From positions 558,001-622,000 of the forward strand of contig NIVC01000260.1 in the NCBI GenBank assembly GCA_002269645.1: a stretch of DNA of 64,000 bases, written 5' to 3'. Source of the DNA: Macrostomum lignano. Its lineage: Eukaryota. Both the position numbers and the translations under genes were made by a program. How positions within the stretch are numbered: the stretch's first letter is position 1; every line of letters begins with the position of its first letter. This document shows, piece after piece, positions 4,709 to 61,295 of the stretch. The notes under the pieces were generated by a model. The model saw nothing but the letters and a program-made list of their open reading frames with translations. It did not search any database and had not been told where the DNA came from.

Positions 4709-5441
4709 TCAGTGCACGCGGAACTTGACCCAGTCGGCGCTCGTCTCGATCTCCTCGTCCACCTGAGCGTCGGTGAACAGCAGCAGGCGGCAGGCTCTCA
4801 GCTTGCTGTTGTACAGCACGTGTCTGCAGCTGGCCGCACGCATGCCAGCTGTCACGCAGTGCATTGCATTCTTCACCTGCAGCAGGTCAGCGTGGCAGTA
4901 CTCGGAGCTCGGGTTGTAGCTGGTGCGCTTGAACGGAGTGCAGCCACAGTTGGCCAGAGGCAGAGCGAGGCTGAGCTGCCCCAACGAACTCGCAGGCGAA
5001 GCCGCACAGTTCCGAGCAGACGTTGTCAGACAGCTTCCCGACCGCGTCATTGTACTGCCCGATGCAGTCCTGGTTGCCTCCGCTGTTGTTTGGATCGCCT
5101 GTTCGCCACAGGGAGTCATTCAGAGGCAGAATGCCCTTGCCTTTCACCAGCTGCCAGCCCGACCTGCTCGTGCCTCTCTCCTCAGCCAGGTCGGACACTC
5201 CGAGCCAGATGTTGCAGCTGCAGTTGAGACTCGGCATGCTGCCCAGCAACTGCAGCGAGCTGTGCGAGTTGAGCAGCTCGCCTCCGATCGATGCGCAGTG
5301 CCGATTCGCTGAGCACCAGGTGGAGCTCTGAGCTGTGCTCACGAACACGCATTTGCCGGCCTCGAGGCTGAACGGAGCGGGGCACGCGGTCAGCTGGGCC
5401 TGCACTGGCGTCAGCTGCCTGCTGTGCAGCAGGGTTAGCAT
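4709..5441 (-). pseudogene. C-type lectin + PAN/apple-like secreted protein, copy 1 (one frameshift)
   Basis: CPAPF...WCSANRHC...WLG...DPNN...DC...C...FACE lectin domain in ORF 4887-5558. The C-terminal domain (CRHVLYNSKLRACRLLLFTDAQV) is in another frame (4709-5119). At ~4940 TGG CTG C ACT lacks 2 nt relative to paralogs (TGG CAG CGG ACT). Confidence 0.85.
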
Positions 5442-6479
5442 AATTATAATGATTTTATTTTGCATACTGCCATTTTGCTTCTTTAACTTAGAAAAATATT
5501 TAAATTTTTGCGACCACGATATTTGGCACTGCAATTTTGTTTCGCGTTCGGGCTCCACCCAGTATAAGCACTATTTATTGAAAAACCCAGCCAAGGATAA
5601 GGTTCACTGAGTCGATTGATCCATACCTCAAGTCGTCGTCATCGCTTAAGAGTTTCCCCACGAATGCTATAATTTATTTCCATCAGTACTCCATTCAATA
5701 GAAGTTTTTCTACAGCCAAGCAGGAAGATCGGTATCAAGCGCGCTGAAGCGGAAATACGGAAAGTCGTCAGAATTTCCACAGGGTTTTTCCGTTACTACG
5801 GATGCAATGCAATACAATAGATGTAGGAATTACGACCGCGCTAATGCAGCAAATGGTTTACACTGTTTCTTCAGAATAGAAAGCACTGTAGTGTTTCAAA
5901 ATAGCAAATGCAAGCACTGAGGCGGTACACAGGTACACATAATTTTTTCCTGGTACGAATTCGCTGTGGCTAACTACAGTTAAACCCGATTGCTCTGATG
6001 AATTGCTGCAGCAGTAGCAGAGAATGCATGTCTAACCCGAGGAACCGGCCTTTATCATCTGTGCGTGGCTTCGTCTGCCACAAAACAATGTGAGACATTT
6101 GCATTGACACCAAATGCGTATAGAATATATTCTTCCTCATCTTAAAGCTTGTGAGACACGAGGGATTTTCTGCAAGAGCGACTGGGGTACCAGTGAGTTT
6201 ATTACTATATAAACTACATTTCCTGTATCTAAAATTCATAAAAATGCATGACACAACTCGAATCTTTGGTTTTTATGAATCTATCTTATCATCTCTGTTA
6301 CAAATATTTGTTACACAGTCAGCTAAGAATGATAAAATAGACTCATAAAACCAAAGAGCCGCGCTGTGCCATTTCAATGGTTTTTAGGCACAAGACACGT
6401 GCAAATGTACGTAGAATAAAAATTCACATAGAATCCTAATTTTCTTAACGAAAAGCTCCATGAATATCGATAGAGCAAT

Positions 6480-6580
6480 AAGAAAGGCACAACTTATCAA
6501 AAGATGAACACTGGATTTGCCTCCTATCAAAAGCAATAACAATTTTTGTGCTGAAAAAATGAAAACTTCCTATCTCCGTG
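6480..6580 (-). repeat. Dispersed repeat; inverted copy of ~896-988
   Basis: GGCACAAC..ATCAAAAGATGAACA..GCAATAACAATT..GTGCTGAAAA..GAAAACTTCCTATCTCC is the reverse complement of the segment inside the foldback spacer. Confidence 0.75.
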
Positions 6581-11453: not shown

Positions 11454-14400
11454 ATGGTTCTAAAAGCTATCCTGGAAGATACCTACAACTTGATGAAAGT
11501 AATTAAGCGAGGTCGCGAAGTAGTTTCTGGTGTAAGTTTCTATTCCTAGAGACTTTATGTTGATTTTTACCTGTTGTCTAGTGATCTGCTCACTGATACC
11601 TGTAGTGACAAATATTCTACCTATTATTCGTGCTGTGTGGTTGTGTGCCCCCTACATGTGTGGCGCACTTTAAGAGACATTGTCATACAACAGGCGAGAG
11701 GCATTACTGCCCATTTCTCTGACTCTGAGCGGGCACACATGCGCGCGGATACGTACGCAGGTCATACACACAGGCACACACTCGCACAGGATTGTACAGC
11801 GGCCCTATAACTTTATATTATCGTTAGGCATGTACACCTCACTGTGCCTTGGGGGTTGGCCCTCAAGGCCGTTAATTGCACGAGCAGAGCCAAGCCGAGA
11901 TTCCAATTTAGCCACAGATTAATGTAACTGCACTTGGAATCGAGCCTGGGCCGCTGGCACATCAGAGCGCGGCGCGACACCACTCAAACCACTGGGCTAC
12001 GGCCCCCTCCCCAACAGGGAGCCCCCTGTACGTGTGCATTGTCTATGCTGGTTTCCTTTGTTCCTCACTCCGCAGAGCATAGCCGAAAGAATTTGCGACT
12101 CGTACAAGCAGCTCAGTCTGGCTGAGAAGGAGACATTCTTCAACATGCTGGTGTCAGATCATGGCGTTGCGGAGACAACCAAAATCGGCATTACATTGGA
12201 CAGGGTAAGATGCTTATTTATTGGGTTTATAACGCCCCAACGCGTGTCATGTGTCATTTTTGGGTAGTGAGATGAGAGATTTTTGGGGAGTGAGATGAGA
12301 GATTTTAGGGGAGTGAGATGAGAGATTTTAGGGGAGTGAGATGTGGGACATTTTTGGGGAGTGAGATGGAATATTTTTGGGGATTGAGATGTGGGACATT
12401 TCTAAGGAGTGAGATGAGAGGTTTCGGGGGTGATATAGGAAATCTTTTAGGGAGTGAGATTAGAGATTTTTGGAGAGTGAGATGTGGGAGATTTTTGGGG
12501 AGTGAGAAGAGAGATTTTTTGGAGGGAGTGAGATGAGAGATTTGGGGGTGAGATGAGATTTTTTTGGGAGTGTGATGAGATATTTTTGGGTAGTGGGATG
12601 AGAGATTTGGGGGTGAGATAAGAGATTTTTGGGAGTGAGATCAGAGATTTTGGGGAGTGAGATGAGAGATTTCTGTGAAGCGGACAGAGTAAGGGTTATT
12701 TACTGAGTTTATAGCGTGTATGATGACGCATCGACTTAAATCTCAGCCAATTATACTCGTATTTTCATCTTGCCCGCAGTCAAATCCTGTGGAGAGCATT
12801 CAACGCCTGCAGAATCTGCGCCACATCACCCAGCCGCAGTTTGCCGGGCTGTTTCGCGTGCTCGGCAAAGCCCAAGGTGGAGTGAAGTTCATGGTTAATA
12901 TGCGCACTGATCTGAGCAAACTCACTGGCAAATCTACTGTAGAAGCTACTCCAGCTGTTGTCCCAGTGATCGACCACGAGCTCAAACAGCTGCTGTCTGT
13001 GTGGTTCAGCTCGGGTCTGTTTCACCTGCAACGGGCTACCTGGGAGTCGCCGAGTAGGCTGTTGGAGAAGGTGAATTTTTCTATGTTCTTCTAGAATTTT
13101 CTTCTATGCACTACATATCGGTAGGCTATTTTAGTAGGCATCGCAAAATGTACAGTAGGTTTTTTATAATTTAAACTTTGGCGCTAAAATTAATGTTGAA
13201 GATGGGAGATTTTTGGAGAGTGAGATGGGAGATTTTTGGAGAGTGAGATGGAAGATTTTTGAGGAGTGAGATAAGAGAGATTTTTGGCGAGTGAGATGGG
13301 AGATTTTCAGAAAATGAGATTTGAGATTTTTGGGAAGTGAGATGAGAGACATTGGGGAGTGAGATGTGAAAATAAATGATTTTTGAAGGATTCGCTTCAG
13401 ATTCCTTCCTTGCTACTTATTAGTAGATAATCACTTACTAAGCACGATTGAATTCCCTACCCTAACCTCGCTGTCAGGTGGCCGCTAGCGAGGCTGTCCA
13501 CCCGATCCTTGGCTGGCAGGATCTCAAACGTCGTGTTGGCGCCTACAAACGCTGCTTCGTGTTCACGCATCCCTGCCTGCCCGGCGAACCGCTGGTCATT
13601 CTTCACGCCGCACTGCTGGAGAATGTGGCCGACACCATGGAGAAAATTGTGCCAGCACTGTTTGAGCACATGCCTGATAGTGTGGAGGATCCCGCCAGGG
13701 TTAAGGTTTGCACTTTCTGGAAAGTGATTTTGAGGCAACAGATGGATGATTTTGAGGGAATAAGATGGATGATTTTGAGGGAACAAGATGGATGATTTTG
13801 AGGGAACAAGATGGATGATTTTGAGGCTACAAGATGGATGATTTTGAGGGAACAAGATGGATGATTTTGAGGGAACAAGATAGATGATTTTGAGGGAACA
13901 AGATGGATGATTTTGAGGGAACAAGATAGATGATTTTGAGGGAACAAGATGGATGATTTTGAGGCTACAAGATGGATGATTTTGAGGCAACAAGATGGAT
14001 GATTTTGAGGAAATGATGGATGATTTTGAGGGAACAAGATGGATGATTTTGAGGAAATGATGGATGATTTTGAGGGAACAAGATAGATGATTTTGAGGGA
14101 ACAAGATGGATGATTTTGAGGCTACAAGATGGATGATTTTGAGGGAACAAGATGGATGATTTTGAGGCAACAAGATGGATGATTTTGAGGCAACAATATG
14201 GATGATTTTGAGGGAATAAGATGGATGATTTTGAGGAAATGATGGATGATTTTGAGGGAATAAGATGGATGATTTTGAGGGAATAAGATGGATGATTTTG
14301 AGGGAATAAGATGGATGATTTTTAGGGAACAAGATGGATGATTTTTAGGGAACAAGATGGATGATTTTGAGGGAACAAGATGGATGATTTTGAGGGAACA

Positions 14401-20225: not shown

Positions 20226-20439
20226 GCTGCCGCTTGGCGTGCTTTTCTATGAATTTCTAAGAGTTACTAGTAACAACTTGTTTTTTTACTTTTGTTTCGT
20301 TTGCTTTTTGTTGCTGCGCCCGATTTAAATAACTGTCCGGAAATATTCCACATTTTGGAGAAATTTTCGAAAAATTTAGTATTGCTGTGCCTGCTTCCGG
20401 CCAGTTACCCCCCCCCCCACAGGCAAGTGAGTGAGCTGT

Positions 20440-20482
20440 GTCTATCTGTCTGTCTGTGTGTGTGTCTGTCTGTCTGTGTGTG

Positions 20483-20545
<63 letters not shown>

Positions 20546-20652
20546 GTCTGTCTGTCTGTGTGTATGTCTGTCTATCTGTCTGTCTGTCTGTCTGTGTGTA
20601 TGTCTGTCTGTCTGTCTGTCTGTCTGTCTTAGTGACTGTCTGTCTGTCTGTG

Positions 20653-20707
<55 letters not shown>

Positions 20708-20985: not shown

Positions 20986-21037
<52 letters not shown>

Positions 21038-21096
21038 GGTTGTCTGTCCGTCTGTCTGCCTGTCTGTCTGTCTGTCCGACTGTCTGTCCGTCTGCC

Positions 21097-21150: not shown

Positions 21151-21151
<1 letters not shown>

Positions 21152-28705: not shown

Positions 28706-28985
28706 CCAGGAGTCGTGCGCATAAAAAAACGAATCTGGTAGTATCTATGTAGTTAGTATCTGAGCCTATAATCTGCTGTGCGTAAAAAATGAAATACTGG
28801 AAGACTGAAATAAAACCTGCTTTTTGGAATGCCATTGTTTATTTAACTTGCTAGTACTTTTTGCTCATTAAGACAACAGTTCGTGATAAATTTGATATTT
28901 AATCTTAGTTATTTAAATAATAAGGGACAAACAGGTGCAATTGAACCTGTACGATCTGCTCTGTAGTGTGTTTGTTCCCTTCGAA

Positions 28986-29705
28986 TCAGACCAGGCGGAA
29001 CTTGACCCAGTCGGCGTTCGTCTCGATCTCCGCCTCCACCTGAGCGTCGGTGAACAGCAGCAGGCGGCAGGCTCTCAGCTTGCTGTTGTACAGCACGTGT
29101 CTGCAGCTGGCCGCACACATGCCAGCAGCTGTACACTCGATGACGCTATCAATGTTTTTTGCATCTTCGAAGCAATAGTAGGAGTTGTTGTAATTCGCTG
29201 GGTCAAAGCGGGCGGCCGTCCAGGTTCGATCAGCTTGGGGTCCAGTTTTGTTCACGAACTCGCAGATGAATCCATAATTTTTCCAGCATTCTCTTGTAGC
29301 GATCTTTCCATCAGGTTTTATTCTTAGACAGAATTCTTCATAGTTGTCACTCAGCCCTCTGAGCAGAGTGCTGTCATCCGGAAAGATGCCGTTGCCATTG
29401 ACCCTCTGCCATCCAGCCGTACTCTTGCCTCTGTAGTCTGCCAGCTGGCTGAGTCCGATCCACAGGTGGCAACTGCAGGATGAGCTGATGCCGCTGCTAC
29501 TCAGTGCCAGGATGGAGCTGTGCGAGTTAACGAGCTCGCCTCCGATCGATGCGCACTGCCGATTGGCTGAGCACCAGCTGTGGCTGTGAGCTGTGCTCAC
29601 GAACAGGCACAGACCGGCCTGCATGGTGAACGGTGCGGGACACAGCAGGGCCTGCGACTGCAGCAGCTGGCAGCTCAGCAGCAGCAGCAGCAGCAGCGCA
29701 AGCAT
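28986..29705 (-). CDS. C-type lectin + PAN/apple-like secreted protein, copy 2 (intact, 239 aa)
   Basis: Signal peptide MLALLLLLLLSCQLLQSQA, lectin cysteines and WIGL, and the conserved C-terminal domain in one open frame. Confidence 0.88.
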   Translation of the reverse strand: MLALLLLLLLSCQLLQSQALLCPAPFTMQAGLCLFVSTAHSHSWCSANRQCASIGGELVNSHSSILALSSSGISSSCSCHLWIGLSQLADYRGKSTAGWQRVNGNGIFPDDSTLLRGLSDNYEEFCLRIKPDGKIATRECWKNYGFICEFVNKTGPQADRTWTAARFDPANYNNSYYCFEDAKNIDSVIECTAAGMCAASCRHVLYNSKLRACRLLLFTDAQVEAEIETNADWVKFRLV

Positions 29706-31236
29706 TTGGCGATGCTCTCTGAACCTAAAAAGCATAAATTTCGGGCCACGAAGATTCGCAGGGATGCTCATTATTTCTACATGATTTAACGGCGATAATG
29801 AGGAAGCCAAAACGCATTCAAACAGATGCCGATTGCATTCTTGCCTTTTGGCTGTTCGGTTCTCTGTCAAGAGTTTGATTCCGCCTGTCGTGGTAGCCTT
29901 CTGCTGTTTGTCTCTGATTGTGTCTCTCTCTTCTCTCTCCCAGTTTCTTCATTTTGCAAACGTCGATTTTGAGGAATATATTTTATTTCCACATTTGGGT
30001 AGAAAGACGCCACATCCGGGGGTTTATTGACAGTCGTGAGCTGGCAGGAGTTGCATTTGCTGTGTCAATAATCCGCTCTGGAAGGGTTTGGCTTTGTTTG
30101 GCCACCTAATGCATCTGAGCCTCAACTGGGTATGGTTGGTTTGAAGACATCAATTAGGAATATCCCTTTCTTGACTTTCTTGTCCAGCTGTTCTTTCGCT
30201 ATTGTGCCGGGCACTCTTGCAGTGCGAGCGCACCCCGTCCTCTGGTGCGGTTGAATCATACCCATGCCCCGGCCGTTCCACCCTCCTTTGATAATTATGT
30301 GAATCGCCAATACATGTGTTGCGAGGTGTGCCTCAGCCAGTTAGCTTAAGCTTCCTTTTTCTGCCATGTCGTTCAACGCCTCCTTAATTATTACCTTGCT
30401 TGCTGTGCGATGATTGGCCAGGCAATTCCTTGCAATGATTTTTTTACTCTGCGCTGTGCTGTGATTGGCTGGTGGGTGCCTGAGCCACCCAAGTTGGGGT
30501 TGGGGCTGGTTTAATCCGGTTGGTTGGGGTGGGGCTCTGAGCCTGCCCTTCCCCTTGCGTTCCGTGGCAAGGGGGAATCTTTAAGCCCAGTGTCGCTTGT
30601 CCCACCCTCCGCGGGCCCCGCCGTGTTTGAGAGATTGTTCCATTCGTAGTGCGCGTCAGAGGGTGCGTCCCAGACTCCCGAGATATTGTTAGCACTTTAC
30701 TGTACTGTACTCTGCAATGACCCACTCCACTGCCTATAGGCCGGGAATTCTGGGATACGACAATCGCAACTGAGCGTCTCTTAAATCTGTGGATGGATTG
30801 CGGAACCTTCCTTTCTAATCTCTCTCAATCTCGATGCAGTAAATCAAGCATTATTGGCGATTCCGACTTATAGTCGTGCATGCAACCCGTCTCCACCTCT
30901 TCAATGTCAATACTGCCGCTTTAACAAATATTTGCGATGCTTTTAAAATGCGTTTTACTTGGGAGTTTGCTGGTTTGCCTTGGACGCGCTTTCTCTCTGA
31001 GTTGTCTTCCTTACCTGCTAAACTGCAACACCAATTACCGCAGCATTATGCGTTCGAGCCAAATCTATAAACTAGCTCCTGACTACGAACAAAGCAAGAC
31101 TTACAAATTTTATTTCTAGGCTAAGAATATTGTCCCTAACAAAATAAAATTGGAGTTAGAAACTTTAGCGTAACCTTTCTTTCATTTGAAATCAGACTTT
31201 AAAAAATAGTCTTTTAGAAAAATCTTTTCGTTCGAA

Positions 31237-32032
31237 TCAGACCAGGCGGAACTTGACCCAGTCGGCGTTCGTCTCGATCTCCGCCTCCACCTGAGCGTCG
31301 GTGAACAGCAGCAGGCGGCAGACTCTCAGCTTGCTGTTGTACAGCACGTGTCTGCAGCTGGCGTCACTTATGCCAGCAGCTGTACACTCGATGGCACTTC
31401 TCACATTCGGCCGCCTTCCGGTCGCCGGTACTGGGTTTAGAGTTTGTCAGAATCCCGAACTCGCAGATGAAGCCGAGCTGACAGCCGCAGTCCCTGTCGG
31501 ATAGCTTTCTGTCGGGTTTCTACCGAAGGCAGTATTCAATTGGCTCGCCAAGCTGACTGAAGAGAGTGCTGTCCTCGGGAAATACCCTGCTGCTGACTGA
31601 AGAGAGTGCTGTCCTCGGGAAATACCCTGCTGCTGACTGAAGAGAGTGCTGTCCTCGGGAAATACCCTGCTGCTGACTGAAGAGAGTGCTGTCCTCGGGA
31701 AATACCCTGCTGCTGACTGAAGAGAGTGCTGTCCTCGGGAAATACTCTGCTGCCGTTGACCCTCTGCCAGCCGGCCCTGCTGCAGCCTCTCATCAGCCAG
31801 GTCGCTCACTCCGATCCACAGGTCGCAGCCGCAGTCCGCAGTTGAAATTTCTCCGTCAACAATCAAATTCGCTTGATCGAGTCGCACGATTGCTGCTTAA
31901 ATGAGTACCAGTCGCTTGTCTGAGCAGTGCTCAGAAACAGGTGCACTTTCCGGCCTAGAGTCGGATGGGACCTGGGCACATCAGAGGTAGCAGAAGCAAC
32001 AGCAGAATCGTGTACAATGATTTAGTGGCCAT
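31237..32032 (-). pseudogene. C-type lectin + PAN-like copy 3 (nonsense codon, deletions, internal 40-bp tandem amplification)
   Basis: MATKSLYTILLLLLLPLMCPGPIRL then TAG where paralogs have E of EAGKC; CGCDLWIGVSDLADER and the conserved 3' block are retained; five 40-bp repeats at ~31553-31752. Confidence 0.85.
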
Positions 32033-32789
32033 CGGGTGCACACAACCTAAGCATAAAAACCGCGAATTAGTCTCATTAATATGCGATCCTGTTTTTGCAT
32101 GTCTTTGGTCCGTTCGTGTGCAACTTAAACTGTACACTGTGTGCCCCTCTTATGACTCTACCGATTCATCCCAACCGACCCCCTGCTTCCCTTCTCGTAT
32201 CTCTCCTTTTCCCCCTCATTATTTATTATTCTTATTGCTGCGATGTCAAGGCTTACTGGGGTGGGGAGAATTGTTAAGCTATCAAGGCTGAAATGTCAGA
32301 AGCTACATGTATAGTTTATTCAGAAAAAATTATTTTATTCTTTGAACTATTTTACTCGAATAGGGTGATTTACTAAACGGAAAAAGAAATGATTTTAAGA
32401 AAATATGTTTTCTTTTTACAGGATTTTCATAAATAATTTCCGTCACTTGCTTATTGGCCTCTCCGAAGGGGGCACTAGATTTCTAGATTTCCTTATCTCT
32501 ACTATCGTCTCTCTCCATTCTTCTCTCTCACTGTCTCCCTCCTACCCCCATCATCTCTAATCTTTGACTCTTGGCTGACTTACTAAATGATAAAAACTAG
32601 GATCTCGAAAAAATCTAAAAAATCTGTTTCCACGGCTTGGGAGGCTGTAAAAATCGCTTTGCTTTAAATTAGGAATCTGCAAACTCCGACCTGAGCACGT
32701 GCGGCTCGCGAAGCCTCTCAATCCGGCCCTCGCGGGTCCTTTGAAACTTGAAACAGCAACCCGGCCCGCTCAAGGCTTGCGTCTCTTCT

Positions 32790-34210: not shown

Positions 34211-34930
34211 TCAGACCAGGCGGAACTTGACCCAGTCGGCGCTCGTCTCGATCTCCGCCTCCACCTGAGCGTCGGTGAACAGCAGCAGGCGGCAGGCTCG
34301 CAGCTTGTTGTTGTACAGCACGTGTCTGCAGCTGGCGTCACTCATGGCGGCTGCAACGCACTCAACAGCGCTGCTCACATGCGGCACTTCGGTGAAGCAG
34401 TACTCGGTGTTGTAGGTGGCTCTCTTGAACGACACCTTCTTCCAATTGGCGAGCTTCCGGTAAGCAGAGGGGTCCTTGTACTCGCAAGCGAATCCATAGT
34501 TACGGTTGCAATAGACGTCTCTGAGCAATCCGAGTTCGTTCATCCGAATGCAGTTTTCATCAGCACCTCCGGATGGTTCGCTTGTGTAAAACAGACTTTC
34601 AGGACTGGCGAAGCCGTTTCCGTTGACCCTCTGCCAGCCGGCTCTCTTCTTGCCTCTCTCATCGGCCAGGTCGCTCAGTCCGAGCCACAGCTGGCAGCTG
34701 CAGGATGAGCTGATGCCGCTGCGATTCAGTGCCAGGATGGAGCTGTGCGAGTTGAGCAGCTCGCCTCCGATCGATGCGCACTGCCGATTAGCTGAGCACC
34801 AGCTGTGGCTGTGAGCTGTGCTCACGAACAGGCACAGACCGGCCTGCATGGTGAACGGTGCGGGACACAGCAGGGCCTGCGACTGCAGCAGCTGGCAGCT
34901 CAGCAGCAGCAGCAGCAGCAGCGCAAGCAT
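34211..34930 (-). CDS. C-type lectin + PAN/apple-like secreted protein, copy 4 (intact, 239 aa)
   Basis: Complete ORF with signal peptide, WLGLSD, EPS..ENC, C..NYGFACE and the C-terminal domain. Confidence 0.9.
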   Translation of the reverse strand: MLALLLLLLLSCQLLQSQALLCPAPFTMQAGLCLFVSTAHSHSWCSANRQCASIGGELLNSHSSILALNRSGISSSCSCQLWLGLSDLADERGKKRAGWQRVNGNGFASPESLFYTSEPSGGADENCIRMNELGLLRDVYCNRNYGFACEYKDPSAYRKLANWKKVSFKRATYNTEYCFTEVPHVSSAVECVAAAMSDASCRHVLYNNKLRACRLLLFTDAQVEAEIETSADWVKFRLV

Positions 34931-39816: not shown

Positions 39817-40533
39817 TCAGAGCAGTCGGAACTTGACCCAGTCGGCGCTCGTCTCGATCTCCGCCTCCACCTGAGCGTCGGTGAACAGCAGCAGGCGGCA
39901 GGCTCTCAGCTTGCTGTTGTACAGCACGTGTCTGCAGCTGGCGTCACTCATAGCGGCTGCAATGCACCTCATGGCGCTGCTCACATTCGGCACATCGGTG
40001 AAGCAGTACTCGGTGTTGTAGGTGGCTCTCTTGAACGACACCTTCTTCCAATTGGCAAGCTTCCGGTAAGCAGAGGGGTCCTTGTACTCGCAAGCGAATC
40101 CATAGTTATGGCTGCAGTTGGCGTCTCTGAGCAGCCCCAGATGGTCCATTCGAATGCAGTTTTCGTCATATCCTGACGGCTCGTATTCGTAAAACAGATC
40201 AAAGGGAGGGTCAGCGAAGCCGTTTCCGTTGACCCTCTGCCAGCCGGCTCTCTTGTTGCCTCTCTCATCGGCCAGGTCGCTCAGTCCGATCCACAGCTGG
40301 CAGCTGCAGGATGAGCTGATGCCGCTGCGATTCAGTGTCAGGATGGAGCTGTGCGAGTTAACGAGCTCGCCTCCGATCGATGCGCACTGCCGATTGGCTG
40401 AGCACCAGCTGTGGCTGTGAGCTGTGCTCACGAACAGGCACAGACCGGCCTGCATGGTGAACGGTGCGGGACACGGCAGGGCCTGCGACTGCAGCAGCTG
40501 GCAGCTCAGCAGCAGCAGCAGCAGCACAAGCAT
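39817..40533 (-). CDS. C-type lectin + PAN/apple-like secreted protein, copy 5 (intact, 238 aa)
   Basis: Complete ORF; closest paralog of copy 4. Confidence 0.9.
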   Translation of the reverse strand: MLVLLLLLLSCQLLQSQALPCPAPFTMQAGLCLFVSTAHSHSWCSANRQCASIGGELVNSHSSILTLNRSGISSSCSCQLWIGLSDLADERGNKRAGWQRVNGNGFADPPFDLFYEYEPSGYDENCIRMDHLGLLRDANCSHNYGFACEYKDPSAYRKLANWKKVSFKRATYNTEYCFTDVPNVSSAMRCIAAAMSDASCRHVLYNSKLRACRLLLFTDAQVEAEIETSADWVKFRLL

Positions 40534-41897: not shown

Positions 41898-41901
41898 GGC
41901 T

Positions 41902-48634: not shown

Positions 48635-49341
48635 TCAGTGCAAGCCGAACTTGACCCAGTCGGCGCTCGTCTCGATATCCGCCTCCACCTGAGTGTCGGT
48701 GAACAGCAGCAGGCGGCAGGCTCTCAGCTTGCTGTTGTACAGCACGTGTCTGCAGCTGGCCGCACGCATGCCAGCTGTCACGCAGTGCATTGCGTTCTTC
48801 ACCTGCAGCAGGTCAGCGTGGCAGAACTCGGAGCTGGGGTTACGCTGCGCTTGAACGGAGTCCGCTGCCACAGTTGGCCTGACGGAGACCTCAGTGTTGC
48901 TTTATCGACAAACTCTCAGACTAACCCAGCCAGATTCAGAACTTGAAGAAGACAACACAGCAACGCAGTCCTGGTTGCCGTCTTGGTTATCAGGCTCAGC
49001 CGATGCCCACAGCGAATTGTCCAGCGGCAGGATGCCGTTGAAACTGGCCAGCTGCCAGTCCGACCTGCTCGTGTTTCGCTCATCGGCCAGGTCGGACACT
49101 CCGAGCCAGACCCAGCAGTCGCAGGCGAGTGTCGGCAGTAGCAGAGCCAGCTAGCTGTGCGAGTTGAGCAGCTCGCCACCGATCGATGCGCATCGCCGAT
49201 TCTCTGTGCTCAAGAACACGGCATTGGCCAAACTCGATGCTGAATGGGCTGGGGCAGGACTGGGTCCGCACCAACAGCAACTCGCAACTGCTCAAGCAGC
49301 CCAGAAGCAGCAATACCAGAGGGCACAAAGCTCTGATTCAT
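48635..49341 (-). pseudogene. C-type lectin + PAN-like copy 6 (several frameshifts and deletions)
   Basis: Fragments CPSPFSIEFGQC, SDLADERNTSRSDWQL..EPDNQDGNQDC and CHADLLQVKNAMHC...WVKFGLH lie in different frames. Confidence 0.85.
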
Positions 49342-50754: not shown

Positions 50755-52612
<1,858 letters not shown>

Positions 52613-52845: not shown

Positions 52846-54248
52846 GTATAACTCGCACAACCTAAGAAGACGGTAAAGCAAACTTAAATTACAAAGTTGG
52901 AAACAATTGAAATGGTTTTAATTTTTTTGAAAAATATGCTATATAACTTTGGAGTTGTTTTGGTCTCAGTTGGATCGGTGAAAACTGCTTAGAGACGACT
53001 GCAGAAGTGCTCGGAGATTAGGGGTCATCTGCTCAGGGATTACGCAAAAAAGTGCTGGTGAACCATTGCTAAACTGTAGAAACCAAGGGCTGTCAATGGC
53101 GAGCTTAAACAAAAAAACAGTAGACACTAGACATCCAGACCAGCCAGACTATTGGAAACTCGTCGACTGGGTATTTAAGTTTCAGTTTTTTCATACATAT
53201 AAAAATCAACAGAAAATGATCAACTCTTTAGGACTGCTAGACAGCTCACGGAGTACTGCAGAATCGCATTCTCTTCATGACAAATGCACTGAGAGCTTTA
53301 GCAACAACAGAAAGGTAAATAAAAAGGAAGAAAAGCGCTTTGAGCGTCTTTACTTGTTTTGCAAGCATCGATATTTGCGTAGGAATTTATTTGTTCGCTG
53401 GCTTCTGCTTACTCACCTGTAAGTGGCTTTTAAAAGGCTGATGTAACAAAACTTTTATGCCATAGCAACGCGGACTGGTCGCAAATCAGATACTCGTAAA
53501 TTCCCGACTGTCTACAATGGAAGAGTTTTTTGGTAACTGCGTGCTCTTTGTCTGTGCTCAACATTTAGCGACAATATAATGCAAGTGCTTCTGATTTTAA
53601 GTGCTCAACTGCTCTGGGCTTCAGCTCAGCCGTGCCCCGCTCCGTTCCACCTCGAGGCCGGCAAGTGCCTATTCGTGAGCACAGTTCAGAGCCGCACCTG
53701 GTGCTCAGCAAATGAGCAGTGCAAATCTATCGGAGGCGAGCTCGTCAACTCGCACGACTCCATCAAGCTGCTACTCGGTCGAAATATTTCCAGTGCCAAC
53801 TGCGGCTGCGACCTGTGGATCGGAGTGAGCGACCTGGCCGATGAGAGAGGCGGCAGCAGGGCCGGCTGGCAGAGGGTCAACGGCAACGGCCTGCTCCCGG
53901 ATGACAACTCCATGTACTTATCATACAATCCTACTGGCTCAACAGGAGAAAACTGCCTGCGCATCAGGAGGGATGTCACTCTTGGTGACAAAAGGTGCCA
54001 CTCTGTTCTCGGCTTCGTGTGCGAGTTTGTGAGTGAGACAGCCCGGCACCCTGCTACCGGAGTTTGGAAGGCCGCTGACTTCAAGCGAGAGCTGCACCAC
54101 TCTGTGTACTGCTTCAGCGATGTGCCGAATGTGAGCAGCGCCATGAGGTGCTTGACTTACTTGACTTAGCTGCAGGGCTGTCCCGGAGGGGACACAGCGG
54201 GAAGGCGCGGGCGCCCATTCCGCTAGTCCCTGAACGGCCGACGCGTCG

Positions 54249-57200
54249 CTATGGACGGAGGGTTGGCGCCGCCCAGGGAGGTCCCCCAGTGTCGCCAGCA
54301 GCTATGGTGCTCTCTGGAAAGGAGAGTTCAGCCCTGCGGGTGGCCCGAAGGTAGCGCATGAGCTGATTAAAGTTTTCGGGTTTGCACGCTTCAGTAATAG
54401 ATGTGTGTGGCCCGAGGTAAGTGAGTCTGGCCCGCGTGAAGGCGGGACAGATGCTGACGAAATGCTCAGCGGTTTCGTCACCTGAGTTGCAGAAACTACA
54501 GGTGGCGTTGGTGGCGTTGCCCTGCAGGTACTGGTGCCTGGAGAAGCAGCCGTGACCAGAGAGGGTCATGGTGGCAGCCCGGATGTCTCTGCGCGAGAGG
54601 CGCAAGAGGAGCTTCCGGAGCTGGTGAGAGGGCTGAGGGACAGCGCCTCTGGATTGCCTGCAGTTCGTGCGGTTCGCCCAAGTCGAGCGGTGCTGAGTCC
54701 TGATCCACGCTTTGATGCGCGAGTCGATGACACAGCCAGGAATCGGGACAAGAGGTTCGGGGCCGAGAGAGGAGCCGGAGGCACCAACTTTTGCAAGGGT
54801 GTCAGCGAACTCATTTCCTCGGATCCCCACATGCCCCGGAACCCACTTAAGGGTAATTTTGTTGGCGGAACCCAACACATTGAGGAGTTTGATACAGTCA
54901 AGGACTGTAGCAGAGTTGGTGCTGCAGCCACTGATGGCGTGCAAGGCAGCTTGGCTGTCCGAATGGAAAATGATGTTCTTACCAGTAACGCCAGTGGCGA
55001 GAAGCTCTGCAGTGCAGGAGCTGATGGCCAGAACTTCATTTTGAAAACACTGGAGTTGACCCCAGTGTATTGAGCGTGGGTAGCGATGACCCTCCCGTTC
55101 AGAAAGATTCCAACACCAAAGCCGGTGTTGGCTGACTGCTTAGAACCGTCGGTGTAGCAATGAAGCTCACCAGGGTTCCAATGGTCATTGATGTTATCGC
55201 GCGAGTCGATAGCTACGGAGTAGCGCTGTCTCAGGTTGAGCGTTGAGGCAATGCCATCGGTGAAGACGCGATTGGCCTGACACTCGTTGAGAAAGTTGAG
55301 GCACAGATCGCTATGCGGGACAAGGTTCCGCTTAGCAGGTGCTCTCATGTAAATGAATTTGACGCCGGCATCAATTAGACGCCGCGTCGTTCTAGCCGCC
55401 TCACCCCTGATGAAGAGGTCAAGAGGCGGAAGATTAAGAAAGGCCCCCATGCCAGCAAAGGGCGTGGACCTGGTGGCGTTGCAGATGAGCCTACACGCTC
55501 TGCCTTGGATCGTGTTGAGCAGGTCTGCATGGCTTTTGACCTGGGTAGCGCTAACCCAGACAACAGAGGCGTACGTAATGGCAGGTCTAACTACGGAAGT
55601 ATAGATCCACCAAAGCCGCTTTGGGGATAGACCCCAAGAAGTGCCAAGTGCTCGTCGGAGCTGGGCCAGGATGGCTGAGGCACGCTTAGCTTTTGCTTTC
55701 ACGTGGAAGGACCAGTTGAGCCGGTGGTCAAGTGTGACCCCGAGACATCTGGTCTGGTGCGCGAAGGCAATATCTCTGCCGTAGAGCTGCAGAGGACGTA
55801 TGTTCCAGCGTAGTCTGCTGGTAAACATAATGGCAACGGTTTTGGGCTCAGAGAGTTCCAAACCATTGTCATTGGCCCAGGATTCTGCTTTGCGGATAAA
55901 GCTCTGCATCAGATCCCTGAGCGTGCTGGGAGACGGTCCTGCCACAATGGCCGTGACGTCATCAGCATACCCGACTTTGAAGACGGGGTCAGGTCGGGAG
56001 TCACTCAGAAGAGCGTCCATGACCAGGTTCCAGAGCGTCGGGGTGAGGACTCCGCCTTGGGGTCCACCCTTACAGACTCTGGTGGAGGCAGTTTGCCCAA
56101 GAAGTTGGGCAGTGACCGTACGGTTGGAGATCATGTACATGATCCACCGTATGAGGGTAGCATGAGCTTTGCGATTTTGAAGGGCCCTCTGAAACGCTTC
56201 AAAGATAACGTTGTCGAAGGCGCCAACAATGTCAAGAAAGAGAGCCAGGGCGTAACCGTCACCCAGTACCGCCCGTTCAATCTTTTCGACAATCGCATGC
56301 AGGGCGCTGTCAGTCGACCTCCCGGTACGGAAGGCGTGCTGATTATTGCTGAGGGGCATCGCTGTCAGCTCGCAGGAGAGCAGCCGCCAGAGAATAAGCC
56401 TCTCAGTGAGCTTAAGCATTGCTGACGTTAAGCTAATTGGCCGGAAGGCCTTGACGCTTTGGTAGTCACCCTTCCCAGGTTTGGGAATAAAGACTACTCG
56501 AGCTTCAGTCCAGCTTTTGGGAACGTATCCCAGCTGGATAGAGGCCCGCATAAGATTGCGGGTGAGTCTCAGGAACGAGGGTATCTTGGCTGCTTCACGA
56601 AGGAGAACAGGGTAGATACCATCAGGTCCAGGAGATTTGAAGGGTTTGAAGGTTCTGACCGCACGAGCGATTAGGTCTTCAGTGACAATGCCCGCCGCTA
56701 GGGTGGCTCCATCCATCGAATGGTTGGGCTCCGGTCTAGCAGTAGGTACCCTCGGGAAGAATGTGCTAAGCATATGCTGAAGCACTTCTTCAGGGTCTTT
56801 AGTAAGAGAGCCATCATCTTTTTTGATCATGGCTAATTTGGACATTTTGTCCATTGTAAGGGCCTTGACAAGCCTAGAAGTAGGTCTGTCTTGATCCAAT
56901 TCATTGCAGAATTGGCGCCACTTACATTCCTTGGCCTTGCGCACTTCAGATTTGAAATTGCGGGAGGCTTGCCGGAAAAGCTCCATGTCCTCCGGGTTTC
57001 CGGTCTTCATGGCACGGCGATGAAGGCTTTTGGCCTTCCGCCTGAGTTTCCCCAGCTCCGGGTTCCACCACGGCGCCGAGGTCTTGCCTCTGTAGGCGCG
57101 AGCAGGACAAGCCGCTTCGTAGGCTGCAATAATGCAACCTGTCAGCGTCTCAGCCATATGATCCACATCCTCGCAGGTCTCAATCGGACGTAAGTCCGTG

Positions 57201-57988
57201 AGTTCCTGCAGGTGCAGATCAAGGGCAGCCTTGTAGGCCGCCCAATCAGTGTTGCGGATATTGCGTCTCCAAGTGATCGGAGACTGGGTTTTAGTGTCCG
57301 CGATATTAAAGGCAATAAAGCAGTGGTCAGACAGGGAGGGCTCCTCAGACCAGACTCTCCACTCCTTGACTCTGTCAAAGAGTCTTGGGGTAACGAGTGT
57401 GGCGTCGAGGACCTCGGTCCATCTGCCATTATTAAAGGTAGGAGTGCTGCCGCGGTTGCAGAGCATGAGGTTTGTGTTAGAGATGAGGGCCAGAAGCTCC
57501 TCTCCTCTAGTGTTGGTATCTTTGCTGCCCCAGTGCTTGTGGTGCGCGTTGAGGTCGCCCCCTAAGCACAGCTCAGCGTTCTGGGACTCGCAGTACTGCG
57601 CAAGGCGCAGTAAACTCTCGGGAGCAGGGTCTCTGTCGCCTGGGATATAAACCGAGGCAACAAGACACGTACGCGGAGAGAAATGATTAGATTGGATGAC
57701 GCAAAGGTCTCCATCAGAGAGATCAGTCCTCAGCCAAGCCTGGAGATGGCTAGCAGCGAGGATAGCCGCTCTAGGGCGGCTGTTCCCCGGGCCACACACA
57801 TAAAAATCAGAGTAGCCAGAGGGAATGTTGGGCAACTTACCGTTGCGCATCCAGGGTTCCTGGATCAGGATGAGGCCTGGCCTGTACAGCTCAGCAATCT
57901 TCATCAGATTTACTGACGCAGATACGCAATGCTGTAAATTTATTTGCAGACAGAATGTCGCTCCTTTGGCAGCGTGGAGCTTAGTCAT
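54249..57988 (-). CDS. LINE ORF2: APE endonuclease, RT, RNase H and CCHC finger (one -1 frameshift at ~55045)
   Basis: QINLQH, LIQEPW, GGDLNAHH, LSDH; FLDIVGAFD, PQGGVLTP, YADD; YTDGSK, DSQAAL, KWVPGHVGIRGNEFAD; CSFC..ETAEHF..C. Adding one C (TTC CAA AAT GAA) restores FQNEVLAI. Confidence 0.92.
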
Positions 57989-58011
57989 ACTGTATTAAAT
58001 GCAATATCTGG

Positions 58012-59588
58012 CTAGAGCCCAGGGTCATCAAGGAGACTTGGACAACAGATCGTCCTCGTCCCAGGCCGCTGGGGCTTGACTGGGAGATGGGAGTTGGTCG
58101 ACGTCCATGGCCTCCTCACCCCCACCGGCCCCCCAGCAGACTCCTCAGGCTCCGATGACAGGATGGAGGAAGCTTCCTCACCTGCATCTTTACCTTCAGA
58201 CCCCACCAAGGTGGCCGAGGAGAGCTCGGATTCCGAAGACCCGGCCTCGTCCTCAACTCCTTCTCCGACTGGCAGGTTTGGTTCCCGGGGCTCGGCCGGA
58301 GCCGTTACCGCGGTCGCCGAACTGCTGCTAGCAGAGGGGCGAGATGCAGCTTTGGCTTTGGGATCGGCTTGCGCCTTTCCTTGGGCCTTAGACTGCGCCC
58401 CGCTCTTGCCGGAGATGCCGGGGTTGGCAGTAGCCTTCCCTTTGGCAGACTTTCCTCGGCGCAACTTGAGCTTGAGGGCACCCAGCTGGAAAGAGGATCC
58501 ATTAGGGTACCGACTCGCCCAAGTGCTGGAAAGGCCGAGGACAATTGAGTTGCCCGTCTCCCCCCTGCGGACTTTACGGTGATACACCAGTCCACTAGCA
58601 GGGAGGTCGGGGTTCAGACGCAGTAGGACCCGGCGAATAACGTCTGGTCCAGCTGCGGTGCTCTTAGCAGGGACGAAAACCACATAGGGTATCGTCTTTG
58701 GACGCTGGCCCTCGCGAAGAAAAAGAGCTCCACCAAGGTCAGCATCCAAGGAGACCGTCGGTAGCCGCTGGAGCAGCCGCCGAGCGTCCTCCTCGCTGCT
58801 AGGAGCAATAAGAACGAATGTGCTTCGCAGCACCATCCGCTCAACGCCGATGGAGATTCCCTCCTCGACAGTCAGCTCAACAGATAGGAGTCAACAGCAC
58901 TCCACACTTTTTGAAGCTGATCAGTGGTCCAGTCCTGGTCGCGACCTTGGATGATCACTCCCGGGATTTTGGCCTTGGCCTTCGCCGCAAAGGTAGCTCC
59001 CGAAGGAACCTCCTTGTTGGCAGTGGCCATTTGTTGCGCCGTGGTTTCGGCCTCAGCAGCCGCGGCAGCAGCTCCAGGGAGCGCCGCCGCTGAACTACTG
59101 GAGCTTCCACCGGCCGGCCCGCCTGGTTGCCTTGGGACTCCAGTCGCTTCAGCATCCATGGTGGACGCCGCCGCTTTGGCCCCCGCAGCTCCCTTCTTGG
59201 CCTGCCTTTTGGCGCGTTGTTTAGCGCGTTTGCGCTCAAGCCGAGCCCGCTGAGCTTCATCGGATCTGCCAGATTTGGCCGGTCCTTTAGGCTCAGAGCT
59301 CGCGGTTCCCTTAGATCCACCAGCGGAGCTGGCAGGTCTTAGGGTGTTTTGAGTTTGGTAGCTCTGGTCGGATCTGCCAGCAGAGCCAGCCGGTCCTTCC
59401 TTTGCCACAGTTGAATCAGTCGGTTGGGATCTGCCAGCAGGGCCGGCCGGTCCTTCGGACTGAGGTTGGGGTTTAGAAGGGTCCCCATCCCTAGAAATAG
59501 CTTGTTTATCCATAGTCGGCTCGAAGGCCATGATAGAAGGTTGGTGGGCTACCCTCAAAGGGGCGCGGTACCCACCCGGCCGCTCCAC
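58012..59588 (-). CDS. LINE ORF1 (one frameshift at ~58875)
   Basis: A basic, low-complexity N-terminus (ERKRAKQRAKRQ). ORFs 58872-59588 and 58012-58836 join if one G is added (TTG GAG CTG); the ORF ends 24 nt before ORF2. Confidence 0.7.
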
Positions 59589-60562
59589 CTGACCGGGCAG
59601 TAGGCCAATAGCACCCTCAAGGCTGGCCCGACACCAGGAGGGGGACCGCTTGCGACCGGACTACTCCCCGGCCTTCCAGCCCATCGGCACGGTCAACACC
59701 TTAGGCATTAGAGAGTACGTTGAGCAGTACCACGGCCTGCAGGTTGGCGAGCCAGACCCGCATACCCAAATTCGGCCGAAGCCACTGGATAGGGTCGCCA
59801 GCGCCGGAGCCCAGTCTGTCCAGCAGCCCTAGGGACTGCCTTGAACACACGCGGGGACGAGTACCCTGGGTCGACTTGCGAGACAGCGTGGGGGGGGGGT
59901 CTGCGGCTGCCAGAGGCAAATAGAGGGTGCAGACCTCCCACCAGCCTTGACCTGCTGAAGATAGGGGCAGGCGTGAAGCATCGCAGACCTTAGCCCATGG
60001 GCCTAGTCTGTCTCATACTTCACTGGCATGCTGAATACGCCTTCGCGTGCGCCATGAGGTGCACTGCAGCCGGCATGCGTGCGGCCAGCTGCAGACACAT
60101 GCTGTACAACAGCAAGCTGAGAGCCTGCCGCCATGAAGCATATGAAGCACATGAGGCATAAGAGGGCTTAGCTCTATTAATATCAGGTGTCATCCATGTC
60201 TTGCTGGTATTTGAAATCAAGTTCCTAGGCCTCATGTTACTTTTTTAGTGCACGATCCCTTGTTAGACATCGGGTATGTTTCCCGTGACAACTACTACTA
60301 TAGACAGCGACTGTCACCTTCAGAAATTCCAGTCGTCACGTACTGACGTACTGACGAACTCACGTACTGTATGCGAACCAAGGCAATGACTGAATGGTTC
60401 CTGGTCAATAACAGTTGGTTTGAAACTATTGATATTAATTGCTCCGAATTTTGGAAACGTGGCAATTAACCTAAACCGCTTCACTTGAAAACTACGTTCA
60501 TGTAGACCAGCTAAGTGCCTACTTTATAACCGTAATACTAGGTAATTTATTGTTAGAATCAA

Positions 60563-61295
60563 ATGAAGTCTCTGCTGCTCCTCTGCATCCTGAGTTGTCA
60601 GCTGCTCTGGGCGTCAGCTCAGCCGTGCCCCGCTCCGTTCCGCCTTGAGGCCGGCAAATGCGTGTTCGTGAGCACAGTTCGAAACTATAGCTGGTGCTCA
60701 GCGAATCGGCAGTGCGCATCGATCGGAGGCGAGCTGCTCAACTCGCACAGCTCATTGAAGCTGCTAAGCAGCATGCCGAGTGTCAACTGCGGCTATTTGC
60801 TTTGGCTCGGCCTGACAGACCTGGCCGAGGAGAGAGGCAGGAGCAGGAGGGGCTGGCAGAGTCAACAGCAACGGAATCCTGCCACTGGACAATGCCCTGT
60901 GGGCTTCGGACGACCCTAACAACGAAGGCGGCAATCAGAACTGCATTACTCTGTCAGCTTCAGGCTTTCGAATGTTTTATCTGCACTGCTCAGGCCTGGC
61001 TGGATTTACCTGCGAGTTTGTCGGCGGACTGATATCGCAACCTCTGTCAAGCAGCTCATGGCGGTGGACTCCGTTCAAGCGCACCAGCTACAACCCCAGC
61101 TCCAAGTTCTGCCACGCTGACCTGCTGCAGGTGAAGAACGCCATGCACTGCGTGGCAGCCGGCATGCGTGCGGCCAGCTGCAGACACGTGCTGTACAACA
61201 GCAAGTTGAGAGCCTGCCGCCTGCTGTTGTTCACCGACGCTCAGGTGGAGGAGATGATCGAGACGAGAGCCGACTGGGTCAAGTTCAGCGTGTAG
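60563..61295 (+). pseudogene. C-type lectin + PAN-like copy 8 (one 2-bp deletion at ~60860)
   Basis: CAG A GTC AAC versus CAG AGG GTC AAC in paralogs; correcting it gives one frame through DDPNNEGGNQNC...GFTCEF...WVKFSV. Confidence 0.85.

Follow-up and report, generated by a model that had tools for sequence, protein, structure and literature searches.

Interlocus exchange of gene segments in a tandem C-type lectin cluster of Macrostomum lignano

Background

Segment swapping between paralogs is real in a tandem cluster of small lectin genes of Macrostomum lignano, and it is a well-known route of multigene-family evolution. The explanation that we prefer, and consider probable, is germline interlocus gene conversion and/or unequal crossover in a lectin family that evolves by birth and death. 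The window is the whole stretch of 64,000 nucleotides analysed here (contig NIVC01000260.1, positions 558,001 to 622,000), and a sequence-only reading of it had proposed that gene conversion or unequal crossover shuffles modules between the gene copies. This proposal is supported by incongruent block trees, by significant PHI, GENECONV-like and max-chi2 tests, and by comparisons with an outside homolog and with the flanks of the copies.

Composition of the lectin cluster

Through tblastn and a six-frame reading of positions 4709-61295, eight gene copies (c1-c8) and one fragment were recovered, all eight copies being intronless and arranged in tandem over ~57 kb (Table 1). Three copies (c2, c4 and c5) are intact; the other five are pseudogenes, and one of these is interrupted by a LINE retrotransposon that is bounded by a 14-bp target-site duplication, GCGCCATGAGGTGC, at 54138-54151 and 60049-60062. 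The region is very repeat-rich, and c3 carries a 40-bp x5 tandem expansion at 31552-31753.

Table 1. Lectin gene copies and associated elements, with positions counted from the first letter of the window.
Feature	Positions	Strand	Description
c1	4709..5450	-	Lineage A CTLD-PAN pseudogene; 2-bp deletion (frameshift) between CTLD and C-terminal domain
c2	28986..29705	-	Intact 239-aa gene; chimera
c2 duplication unit	28808..30900	-	Flanks align to c4 unit (34016-35726), 78-82% identity
c3	31237..32040	-	Lineage C pseudogene, heavily decayed (stops, frameshifts)
c4	34211..34930	-	Intact 239-aa gene, lineage B
c5	39817..40533	-	Intact 238-aa gene, lineage B
c6	48635..49330	-	Lineage A pseudogene; in-frame stops and deletions
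c7, 5' part	53579..54151	+	Lineage C copy broken by LINE insertion
LINE retrotransposon in c7	54152..60048	-	Endonuclease, reverse transcriptase, RNase H
c7, 3' remnant	60063..60132	+	First 17 codons of 3' anchor, then truncated
c8	60560..61295	+	Lineage A pseudogene; 2-bp deletion (frameshift) in CTLD

The encoded protein, of ~239 aa, is predicted to be secreted: a signal peptide is followed by a C-type lectin domain and, at the C-terminus, by a putative PAN/apple-like domain. The Pfam model Lectin_C (PF00059) matches c2, c4 and c5 with 26.4-29.3 bits (cutoff 22.6), and a profile match to the DC-SIGN CRD extends over residues 17-158 (E 2e-10) with the EPN position aligned; these matches place the predicted products of c2, c4 and c5 among the C-type lectin-like domain (CTLD) proteins. 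For the Pfam model PAN_1, c4 reaches 19.2 bits against a cutoff of 21.4 and c2 and c5 have no match, while the cutoff is passed by two more distant relatives, P0020 (22.9) and P0024 (21.6). A structure model of c4, built on an alignment of five sequences, had a pLDDT of 36.9, too low for use.

The best protein matches of the cluster genes are Macrostomum lignano proteins, two of which (P0001 and P0003) are UniProt entries without DNA on record; when homologs were sought again with a profile of seven sequences, the same two relatives came up. In the literature, a search for small CTLD-PAN genes of Macrostomum yielded only large adhesion proteins with lectin domains and none of this family. Secreted CTLD + PAN_1 proteins of ~240 aa, including P0010, P0015, P0020 and P0024, are present in metagenome and transcriptome assemblies, and their length, domain order and cysteine pattern match those of the window copies, with which they also have in common the C-terminal motif (L/Y)(F/Y)TDA...GW.KF; however, their identity to the window copies is only about 25-35%. 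Across the wider family the C-terminal motif is kept as C.LLLFTDAQ..GW.KF.

Mosaic structure of the copies

Three lineages, A (c1/c6/c8), B (c4/c5) and C (c3/c7), form the backbone of most block trees, and patches together with one clear chimera, c2, overlie this backbone. The 5' ~240 bp of c2 is 99-100% identical to c5, its interior is unique (43-52% identity to c4/c5), and its last 163 bp match c3 at 97% identity. Block trees are incongruent: c2 is placed with c4/c5 at 100% bootstrap in the 5' block and, further 3', with c3 (97% bootstrap) or with c3/c7 (61%). Patches are found in c5, which is c7-like at 8/8 sites in alignment columns 752-783, and in c3, whose WIG block is a 98% c7-like patch.

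Other combinations had been pointed out in the sequence-only reading, whose peptide motifs were all recovered in the places it gave. It was right that c7 joins a c8-like N-terminus (74-80%) to a c3-like part, with 98% identity to c3 over the WIGVSDLADER block, and that c3 is a mosaic, in which a c5-like stretch, a c2-like one (IECTAAG) and again a c4/c5-like one (SDASC) follow each other within 60 bp. The sharing of SMPSxNC and YNPSS..CHADLLQVKN between c8 and c1 is equally real, but it is ordinary shared ancestry within the c1/c6/c8 lineage and not mosaicism. Moreover, the claim that blocks assort independently was overstated: the block trees do conflict, but assortment is not free because the three-lineage backbone persists.

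Site-pattern strings show clean switches between copies, and the breakpoints are sharp and statistically supported. A GENECONV-like permutation test gave p<=0.0005 for c2-c4, c2-c5, c1-c6, c2-c3 and c4-c8, PHI gave p<=0.0005 in four taxon sets and max-chi2 gave p 0.002-0.024, in site-based tests to which the poorly aligning variable blocks add noise; the permutation tests leave regional rate variation unmodelled, and the triplet and flank arguments are independent of such variation. The per-block trees and the GENECONV-like tests therefore returned the opposite of what would count against exchange, namely congruent trees lacking significant conversion tracts.

Flanking DNA and duplication history

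The flanks serve as a timing baseline for copy exchange. On both sides of c2 and c4 they are homologous, with 78-82% identity, whereas the 5' coding parts of the two genes are 93-100% identical (dS 0.05) and their interiors only 43-52%, with saturated dS; the 5' coding parts are thus more alike, and the interiors far less alike, than the flanking DNA. Divergence inside the tracts departs from that of the surrounding duplicated DNA. The c2 unit abuts the 3' flank of c3 (30917-31236), which aligns to the 3' flank of c5 (39355-39816) at 74.5%, and the c2/c4 and c3/c5 flank homologies therefore indicate a two-gene segmental duplication, (c5,c4) to (c3,c2) or the reverse.

The flanks of c4 and c5 cannot be aligned (45-49%), while the coding sequences are 91% identical (dS 0.117 overall), the homology running from an acceptor-like site, ttttag, about 25 nt upstream of the ATG to about 10 nt past the stop codon. 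Spread or overwriting of copies via an RNA intermediate, by retroposition or by RNA-templated repair with a LINE reverse transcriptase, would account for homology limited to the transcribed unit, and the genes are intronless and a full-length LINE lies within the cluster. We consider this route extremely improbable, since no poly(A) tract or target-site duplication lies beside any copy, c2/c4 and c3/c5 share genomic flanks as a DNA-level segmental duplication predicts, and many tracts are short ones inside the genes, as DNA heteroduplex repair would leave them; moreover, the UTRs are so short that transcript-limited and coding-limited homology look the same.

Mosaics and near-identity could also arise as artefacts, through chimeric joins of paralogs, haplotypes or homeologs during assembly, or through polishing with mis-mapped reads. 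All the identities given here come from one assembly of a repeat-rich, possibly polyploid genome, in which consensus polishing could inflate the identity of similar blocks; M. lignano is reported to be a hidden polyploid and difficult to assemble (PMC10468722), and short identical blocks in such a repeat-rich region are where reads mis-map. Every copy, however, has its own unique flanks and private anchor substitutions, and the junctions lie within continuous sequence, some patches being only 46-100 bp long with diverged sequence on either side. The anchor peptide is also found in M. lignano proteins that were annotated independently and in a metagenome contig of separate origin, and the homologous flanks of c2 and c4 are consistent with a coherent history of duplication. 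An artefact is therefore very unlikely.

Anchor blocks and an outside homolog

The two blocks that frame the variable segments had been described as near-identical even at synonymous sites, and this holds best for the 3' block. It comprises the last 39 codons (118 bp), is 91-98% identical in 28/28 pairs, and differs at synonymous sites by a pS of only 0-0.14 among the window copies, against 0.45-0.94 for between-lineage pairs in blocks B3, V3 and B4; far from being saturated, as an explanation by amino-acid conservation would have them, its synonymous sites are nearly invariant. Its 16 polymorphic columns are mostly singletons, private to single copies. The 5' block (~60 bp, WCSANRxCASIGGELxNSH) is 82-100% identical among seven copies and less extreme (pS 0-0.42); in c3 it is deleted or diverged, with a 21-bp loss, and in c6 a 24-bp loss adjoins it. 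The 3' anchor is still intact in both of these decayed pseudogenes, at 95-98% identity, and pN is about equal to pS within it; amino-acid constraint alone is therefore insufficient to explain the block. The homogenised blocks have a high GC3 (0.86-0.90), with 0.90 in the 3' anchor.

The outside comparison rests on a single DNA homolog, X1 (L001), a metagenome contig; a scan of JGI metagenome contigs for DNA encoding EIETSADWVKF found none. In blocks V1, V3 and B4, X1 clusters with c1/c6/c8, whereas in the 3' anchor it is equally distant from every window copy (85-88% identity, 11 fixed differences), with a pS of 0.21-0.30 against 0-0.14 within the window. In the anchor, distances among the window copies are thus 2-4 times smaller than those to X1, and the order is reversed in the other blocks (relative test, Fisher, p 0.0017-0.04 in five of six comparisons and p 0.12 in the sixth). 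Against this one outside sequence, therefore, paralogs within the genome are more alike in the homogenised block than they are to the outside relative.

The anchors could instead be fixed, with no transfer at all, by selection on the nucleotide sequence, acting for example on an element of mRNA localisation, stability or translation, on a small-RNA target, or through extreme codon preference. Even X1 shares two anchor stretches, of 33 and 27 nt, without a single difference, the anchor GC3 is compatible with such selection, and the anchor pS between X1 and the window is about half the X1-c1 pS of the other blocks (0.41-0.68); some extra synonymous constraint, codon bias or non-orthology therefore also contributes. 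As a full explanation, however, nucleotide selection is unlikely. It does not predict pN about equal to pS inside the anchor, nor the smaller distances within the window than to X1, and the old pseudogenes c3 and c6, which should be free of it, keep the anchor. No stable RNA fold was predicted in the 3' anchor (fold z-score 0.07) and Rfam gave no match, and an RNA element was rejected as the main cause of its conservation. Moreover, the pair-specific patches (c2-c5, c3-c7, c5-c7 and c2-c3) and the contrast between flanks and interiors would be left unexplained.

On these observations, the cluster is a multigene family under interlocus gene conversion or concerted evolution.

Variable blocks and the sugar-binding loop

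Classical Ca2+-dependent sugar binding needs an EPN or QPD triplet together with a WND motif. At the position aligned to the EPN of DC-SIGN, a site predicted from the alignment, the copies read EPS (c4, c5), DPN (c1, c8), EPD (c6), NPT (c7) and LSD (c2); EPN itself is present only in X1. The WND position reads (L/R/G)(S/R)D in the copies.

Block-wise pN/pS in the variable blocks is about 1 or saturated, and dN/dS between c4 and c5 is 0.43 overall; positive selection is not claimed. A diversity-generating retroelement acting on a CTLD-fold target was also rejected: the only reverse transcriptase is that of an ordinary LINE with endonuclease and target-site duplication, and the differences among the variable blocks amount to 50% and include indels, in contrast to a pattern of adenine-specific substitutions.

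Proposed mechanism and comparison with known systems

According to the preferred explanation, the tandem cluster would evolve by gene birth and death, with repeated germline non-allelic recombination on top, the exchanged tracts measuring about 46-750 bp. The most constrained parts of the protein are probably encoded by the 5' and 3' blocks; conversion would therefore be tolerated there and would keep the blocks similar enough to pair further. The intervening blocks, which appear to include the CTLD long loop with the EPN-type sugar/Ca2+ site, may be kept distinct, probably via selection for different ligand specificities, and would change mostly by occasional cassette replacement. The high GC3 of the homogenised blocks may reflect GC-biased gene conversion.

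Vertebrate MHC genes and the NK-receptor C-type-lectin-like clusters (Ly49/KLR) undergo concerted or birth-and-death evolution by interlocus gene conversion. They resemble the present cluster in their tandem paralogs with pseudogenes, short conversion tracts, incongruent block trees and conserved framework blocks beside diverse ligand-contact segments. The cluster differs from them in that its genes are intronless, encode predicted secreted CTLD-PAN proteins and belong to a free-living flatworm.

Pseudogenes act as donors of gene conversion in the chicken immunoglobulin pseudo-V genes, and snail FREPs are a proposed invertebrate case; as in our cluster, variable segments lie between conserved blocks, and non-functional copies next to functional ones continue to exchange sequence. 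The cluster could be read as a diversification system, in which recombination is anchored in the 5' and 3' blocks and sugar-loop cassettes of pseudogenes or paralogs are copied into the three intact genes, frequently enough to vary between individuals or somatic cells and to give a variable lectin repertoire; in a sub-variant, the copying could be RNA-templated, via the LINE reverse transcriptase. This reading is very improbable. Pseudogene-donor systems act somatically on one defined acceptor gene, with promoter-less fragments as donors, whereas the cluster, a single assembled sequence, has three complete intact genes and full-length decayed pseudogenes, and nothing in it points to somatic events or to a dedicated enzyme.

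The Sp185/333 (SpTransformer) immune genes of the purple sea urchin likewise form clusters of small genes, in which shared blocks are combined into mosaics, amid short tandem repeats and segmental duplications, with recombination or gene conversion proposed as the diversifier (PMC5103432, PMC1988830). The Sp185/333 protein is, however, unrelated and has no CTLD, and its mosaics are presence/absence 'element patterns'. The family is reported to be free of pseudogenes (PMC5103432), whereas 5/8 of the copies here are pseudogenes.

Conclusions

The cluster is a compact invertebrate lectin case of interlocus gene conversion, with eight intronless copies in 57 kb and datable flanks, in a flatworm genus used as a laboratory model. 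Gene models and orthology calls at this locus will be unreliable, and so will the mapping of reads. The pattern of exchange sets a homogenised scaffold apart from a diversified sugar-binding loop, and this split points to selection for varied ligand recognition, in immunity, in the sensing of food or microbes, or in reproduction. If exchange were frequent between individuals, or somatic, a lophotrochozoan case would be added to the few animals in which templated recombination is a source of diversity in recognition proteins.

Organisation of the lectin gene cluster

Eight copies of one intronless gene (c1-c8) and one fragment were found by six-frame reading and tblastn at positions 4709-61295 of the window, whose sequence is eukaryotic. 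The intact copies encode proteins of 238-239 aa with a signal peptide and a C-type lectin-like domain, CTLD (Pfam Lectin_C 26-29 bits, cutoff 22.6; match to the DC-SIGN CRD, E 2e-10), followed by a C-terminal cysteine-rich domain scoring 19.2 bits for PAN_1, slightly below the cutoff of 21.4. The nearest proteins in the databases both come from Macrostomum lignano: c4 shares 85% identity with one of them, and the second is a c1-like sequence fused within a symporter gene model. The window is accordingly assigned to M. lignano or a near relative. When 1.8 billion representatives were searched with a profile, the ~240-aa CTLD+PAN architecture recurred in many assemblies, and the best-conserved part of this wider family is the C-terminal motif (L/Y)FTDA...GW.KF. 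The tandem expansion in c3 is very recent.

Features of the window and of the outside contig
Feature	Position	Strand	Description
c1	4709-5450	-	pseudogene; 2-bp deletion, frame shifted
c2	28986-29705	-	intact, open from ATG to stop
c3	31237-32040	-	pseudogene; heavy decay (several stops, frameshifts, deletions)
c3 tandem expansion	31552-31753	-	40-bp unit x5.1, 99% identity, within CTLD long-loop region
c4	34211-34930	-	intact, open from ATG to stop
c5	39817-40533	-	intact, open from ATG to stop
c6	48635-49330	-	pseudogene; heavy decay (several stops, frameshifts, deletions)
c7	53579-54151, 60063-60132	+	pseudogene; split by LINE, truncated past 60132
c8	60560-61295	+	pseudogene; 2-bp deletion, frame shifted
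Acceptor-like sites (examples)	34950-34956, 40553-40559, 29725-29731		upstream of start codons
LINE in c7	54152-60048	-	5.9 kb, near full-length; 14-bp target-site duplication on both sides
LINE RNase H segment	54252-55139		
LINE RT ORF	54569-57994		
LINE upstream ORFs	58015-58890, 58875-59660		no Pfam match
7TM receptor ORF	1841-2665	+	rhodopsin family; Pfam 7tm_1, 60 bits
14-bp minisatellites	1-234, 1181-1498		adjoin 7TM receptor ORF
Malonyl-CoA decarboxylase exons	12693-13091, 19094-19516	+	Pfam MCD_N and MCD
Minisatellite array in apparent decarboxylase intron	13725-19110		5.4 kb; 23-bp unit, 236 copies, 94% matches
Long (TGTC)n and (TCTG)n microsatellites, several minisatellites	20439-21151, 50757-52612, 26072-28184, 28548-28706, 32860-33085		among lectin copies
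151-bp repeat family	22991-24206, 38821-39182, 40689-41851		
151-bp family inverted pair	40689-41198 / 41341-41851		93% identity
X1	L001 1-967		complete lineage-A homolog; metagenome contig, ENA ERZ27315224

The LINE carries endonuclease, reverse transcriptase and RNase H domains; because its RNase H and RT segments lie in different frames, it has a frameshift or an assembly indel. An apparent intron parts the decarboxylase exons, and the array in it has a strong G-over-C skew. The 151-bp repeats form a tandem array near 23 kb and recur inverted on either side of c5, which they may bracket as a transposon or foldback element.

Near-identical ends around divergent middles

The eight coding sequences were aligned, with the LINE removed from c7, and scored per block. 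The sequence-only reading had described near-identical anchor blocks around poorly alignable segments, and its observation is confirmed: the final 118 bp of coding sequence (39 codons, SCRHVLYNSKLRACRLLLFTDAQVEAEIETSADWVKF) are 91-98% identical across all pairs, synonymous sites included, with pS of 0-0.14 as against 0.45-0.94 in the blocks B3, V3 and B4 of between-lineage pairs (Nei-Gojobori). At the 5' anchor of ~60 bp (WCSANRQCASIGGELLNSH) near-identity holds for seven copies (82-100%), c3 being partly deleted there, and between the two anchors the identity across lineages falls to 21-60%. In the 3' block pN (0.01-0.09, Nei-Gojobori) is about equal to the low pS; thus amino-acid constraint with saturated synonymous sites does not describe this block. 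The window copies vary there at only 16 columns, mostly singletons. GC3 peaks in the homogenised blocks (0.86-0.90) and goes down to 0.38-0.45 in the private cassette of c2, a contrast that would be the footprint expected from GC-biased conversion.

Mosaic structure and recombination tests

Switches were read from three-sequence site patterns. Up to alignment column ~314, c2 equals c5 at 89 of 91 informative sites; past it c2 is unrelated to c4 and c5, while these two agree. As had been proposed, c7 joins a c8-like N-terminus to a c3-like segment (the WIGVSDLADER block, 98% identical to c3), and c3 is a mosaic, switching from c5-like to c2-like and back inside 60 bp. In columns 752-783, c5 sides with c7 and not with c4 at 8/8 sites; at this patch an M. 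lignano lineage-B protein has VEC like c4, which mildly suggests, as far as protein-level parsimony goes, that c5 was the recipient and acquired its MRC version from a c7-like copy.

GENECONV-like permutation was significant for c2-c4, c2-c5, c1-c6, c2-c3 and c4-c8 (p<=0.0005), as were PHI in four taxon sets (p<=0.0005, observed values >6 SD under the permutation mean) and the two-breakpoint max-chi2 (p 0.002-0.024). In bootstrapped block trees c2 moves from c4/c5 in the 5' block (100%) to c3/c7 in the middle (61%) and c3 in B4 (97%), and this conflict, together with the tests, supports the proposed gene conversion or unequal crossover, with caveats. A backbone of three lineages, A (c1, c6, c8), B (c4, c5) and C (c3, c7), recurs in these trees and therefore contradicts the independent assortment of blocks; the motifs shared by c8 and c1 are real but reflect ordinary common descent within lineage A.

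The alignment patterns show that tandem and inverted paralogs as much as 56 kb apart have repeatedly exchanged sequence, non-reciprocally or unequally, in tracts of ~46 bp (c5-c7), 83-100 bp (c3-c7), 163 bp (c2-c3), ~240-330 bp (c2-c5) and ~750 bp (c4-c5). An assembly or polishing artefact is an unlikely source, since each copy is marked by flanks and substitutions of its own, and independent data again contain the anchor peptide.

Probable homogenisation and possible sequence constraint

Three independent lines (the pseudogenes, the outside homolog X1 and the flanks) favour copy-to-copy transfer as the probable route of homogenisation. Although reading frame and sequence are lost over other parts of the decayed c3 and c6, both retain an intact 3' block with 95-98% identity to the other copies, which argues against nucleotide-level constraint or codon bias as the main cause of the near-identity. 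X1, the sole outside homolog used, groups with lineage A over the variable blocks (68-86% to c1 in V1, V3 and B4; bootstrap of A plus X1 79-98%), and its 3' block is equidistant from all window copies (85-88%, pS 0.21-0.30, 11 fixed differences). In the anchor c1 is nearer to c4 than to X1, and everywhere else the order is opposite (of six Fisher comparisons, five give p 0.0017-0.04 and the remaining one 0.12), as concerted evolution would predict. Because anchor pS between X1 and the window is about half of that between X1 and c1 elsewhere, and two anchor stretches (27 and 33 nt) do not differ between genomes, nucleotide-level constraint or codon bias is retained as a contributing factor. The 3' anchor showed nothing unusual in RNA folding (z 0.07) and had no match in Rfam.

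X1 has the canonical EPN motif, and its occurrence in that environmental assembly indicates that flatworm DNA is present there; the N-terminal ~45 codons are missing from the gene model called on the contig, which begins at an internal Met.

As to the flanks, c2 and c4 have both in common (78-82% identity) and c3 and c5 the 3' one (74.5%), which shows a two-gene segmental duplication relating (c5,c4) and (c3,c2). The 5' coding part of c2-c4 is 93-100% identical (dS 0.05) against ~20% flank divergence, and their interior is 43-52% identical with saturated dS; judged by these divergences, undisturbed descent is ruled out, the former being too alike and the latter too unlike. The flanks of c4 and c5 are unalignable (45-49%) despite coding sequences 91% identical (dS 0.117), and homology runs from ~25 nt 5' of the ATG to ~10 nt 3' of the stop codon. 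Such transcript-like limits, and the intronless structure, are all that hints at an RNA-mediated route; against it, no copy is flanked by a poly(A) tract or target-site duplication, and flank homology at the DNA level is present.

A ttag/ttttag acceptor-like site lies 6-25 nt 5' of the ATG in c2, c4, c5, c7 and c8 (c1 has weaker ag-ending candidates only), and the c4-c5 homology begins at it. It may be a candidate spliced-leader trans-splice acceptor (PMC8629364 reports trans-splicing in M. lignano). The 3' UTRs are apparently very short, with AATAAA 14 nt past the stop codon in c4.

Proposed mechanism and comparison with known systems

Throughout the wider family, protein constraint on the scaffold-coding ends would be strong, and conversion in them would be harmless and self-sustaining because similar sequence goes on pairing. 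In the alignment with DC-SIGN, the EPN and WND positions fall in the middle blocks V2 and B3, where the copies have EPS, DPN, EPD, NPT or LSD; the predicted ligand-binding loop is therefore the part kept diverse, probably through selection, and with occasional replacement of whole cassettes, as presumed in c2, whose donor is absent from the window.

Somatic or programmed diversification would fit poorly with an architecture unlike an acceptor gene plus donor array. The sea-urchin Sp185/333 clusters are similar in that small mosaic genes sit among repeats (PMC5103432); the flatworm cluster differs from them in protein family, in mosaic type and in its many pseudogenes. The repeats among the lectin copies recall the STR-rich Sp185/333 clusters, with no link between repeats and breakpoints established. 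A DGR identity for the cluster was rejected.

No description of small CTLD-PAN lectins of Macrostomum was found in the literature searched, where this gene family appears to be undescribed; its evolutionary mechanism is standard. In its behaviour the flatworm cluster is like the MHC and NK-receptor lectin-like clusters, classical cases of birth-and-death evolution accompanied by interlocus gene conversion.
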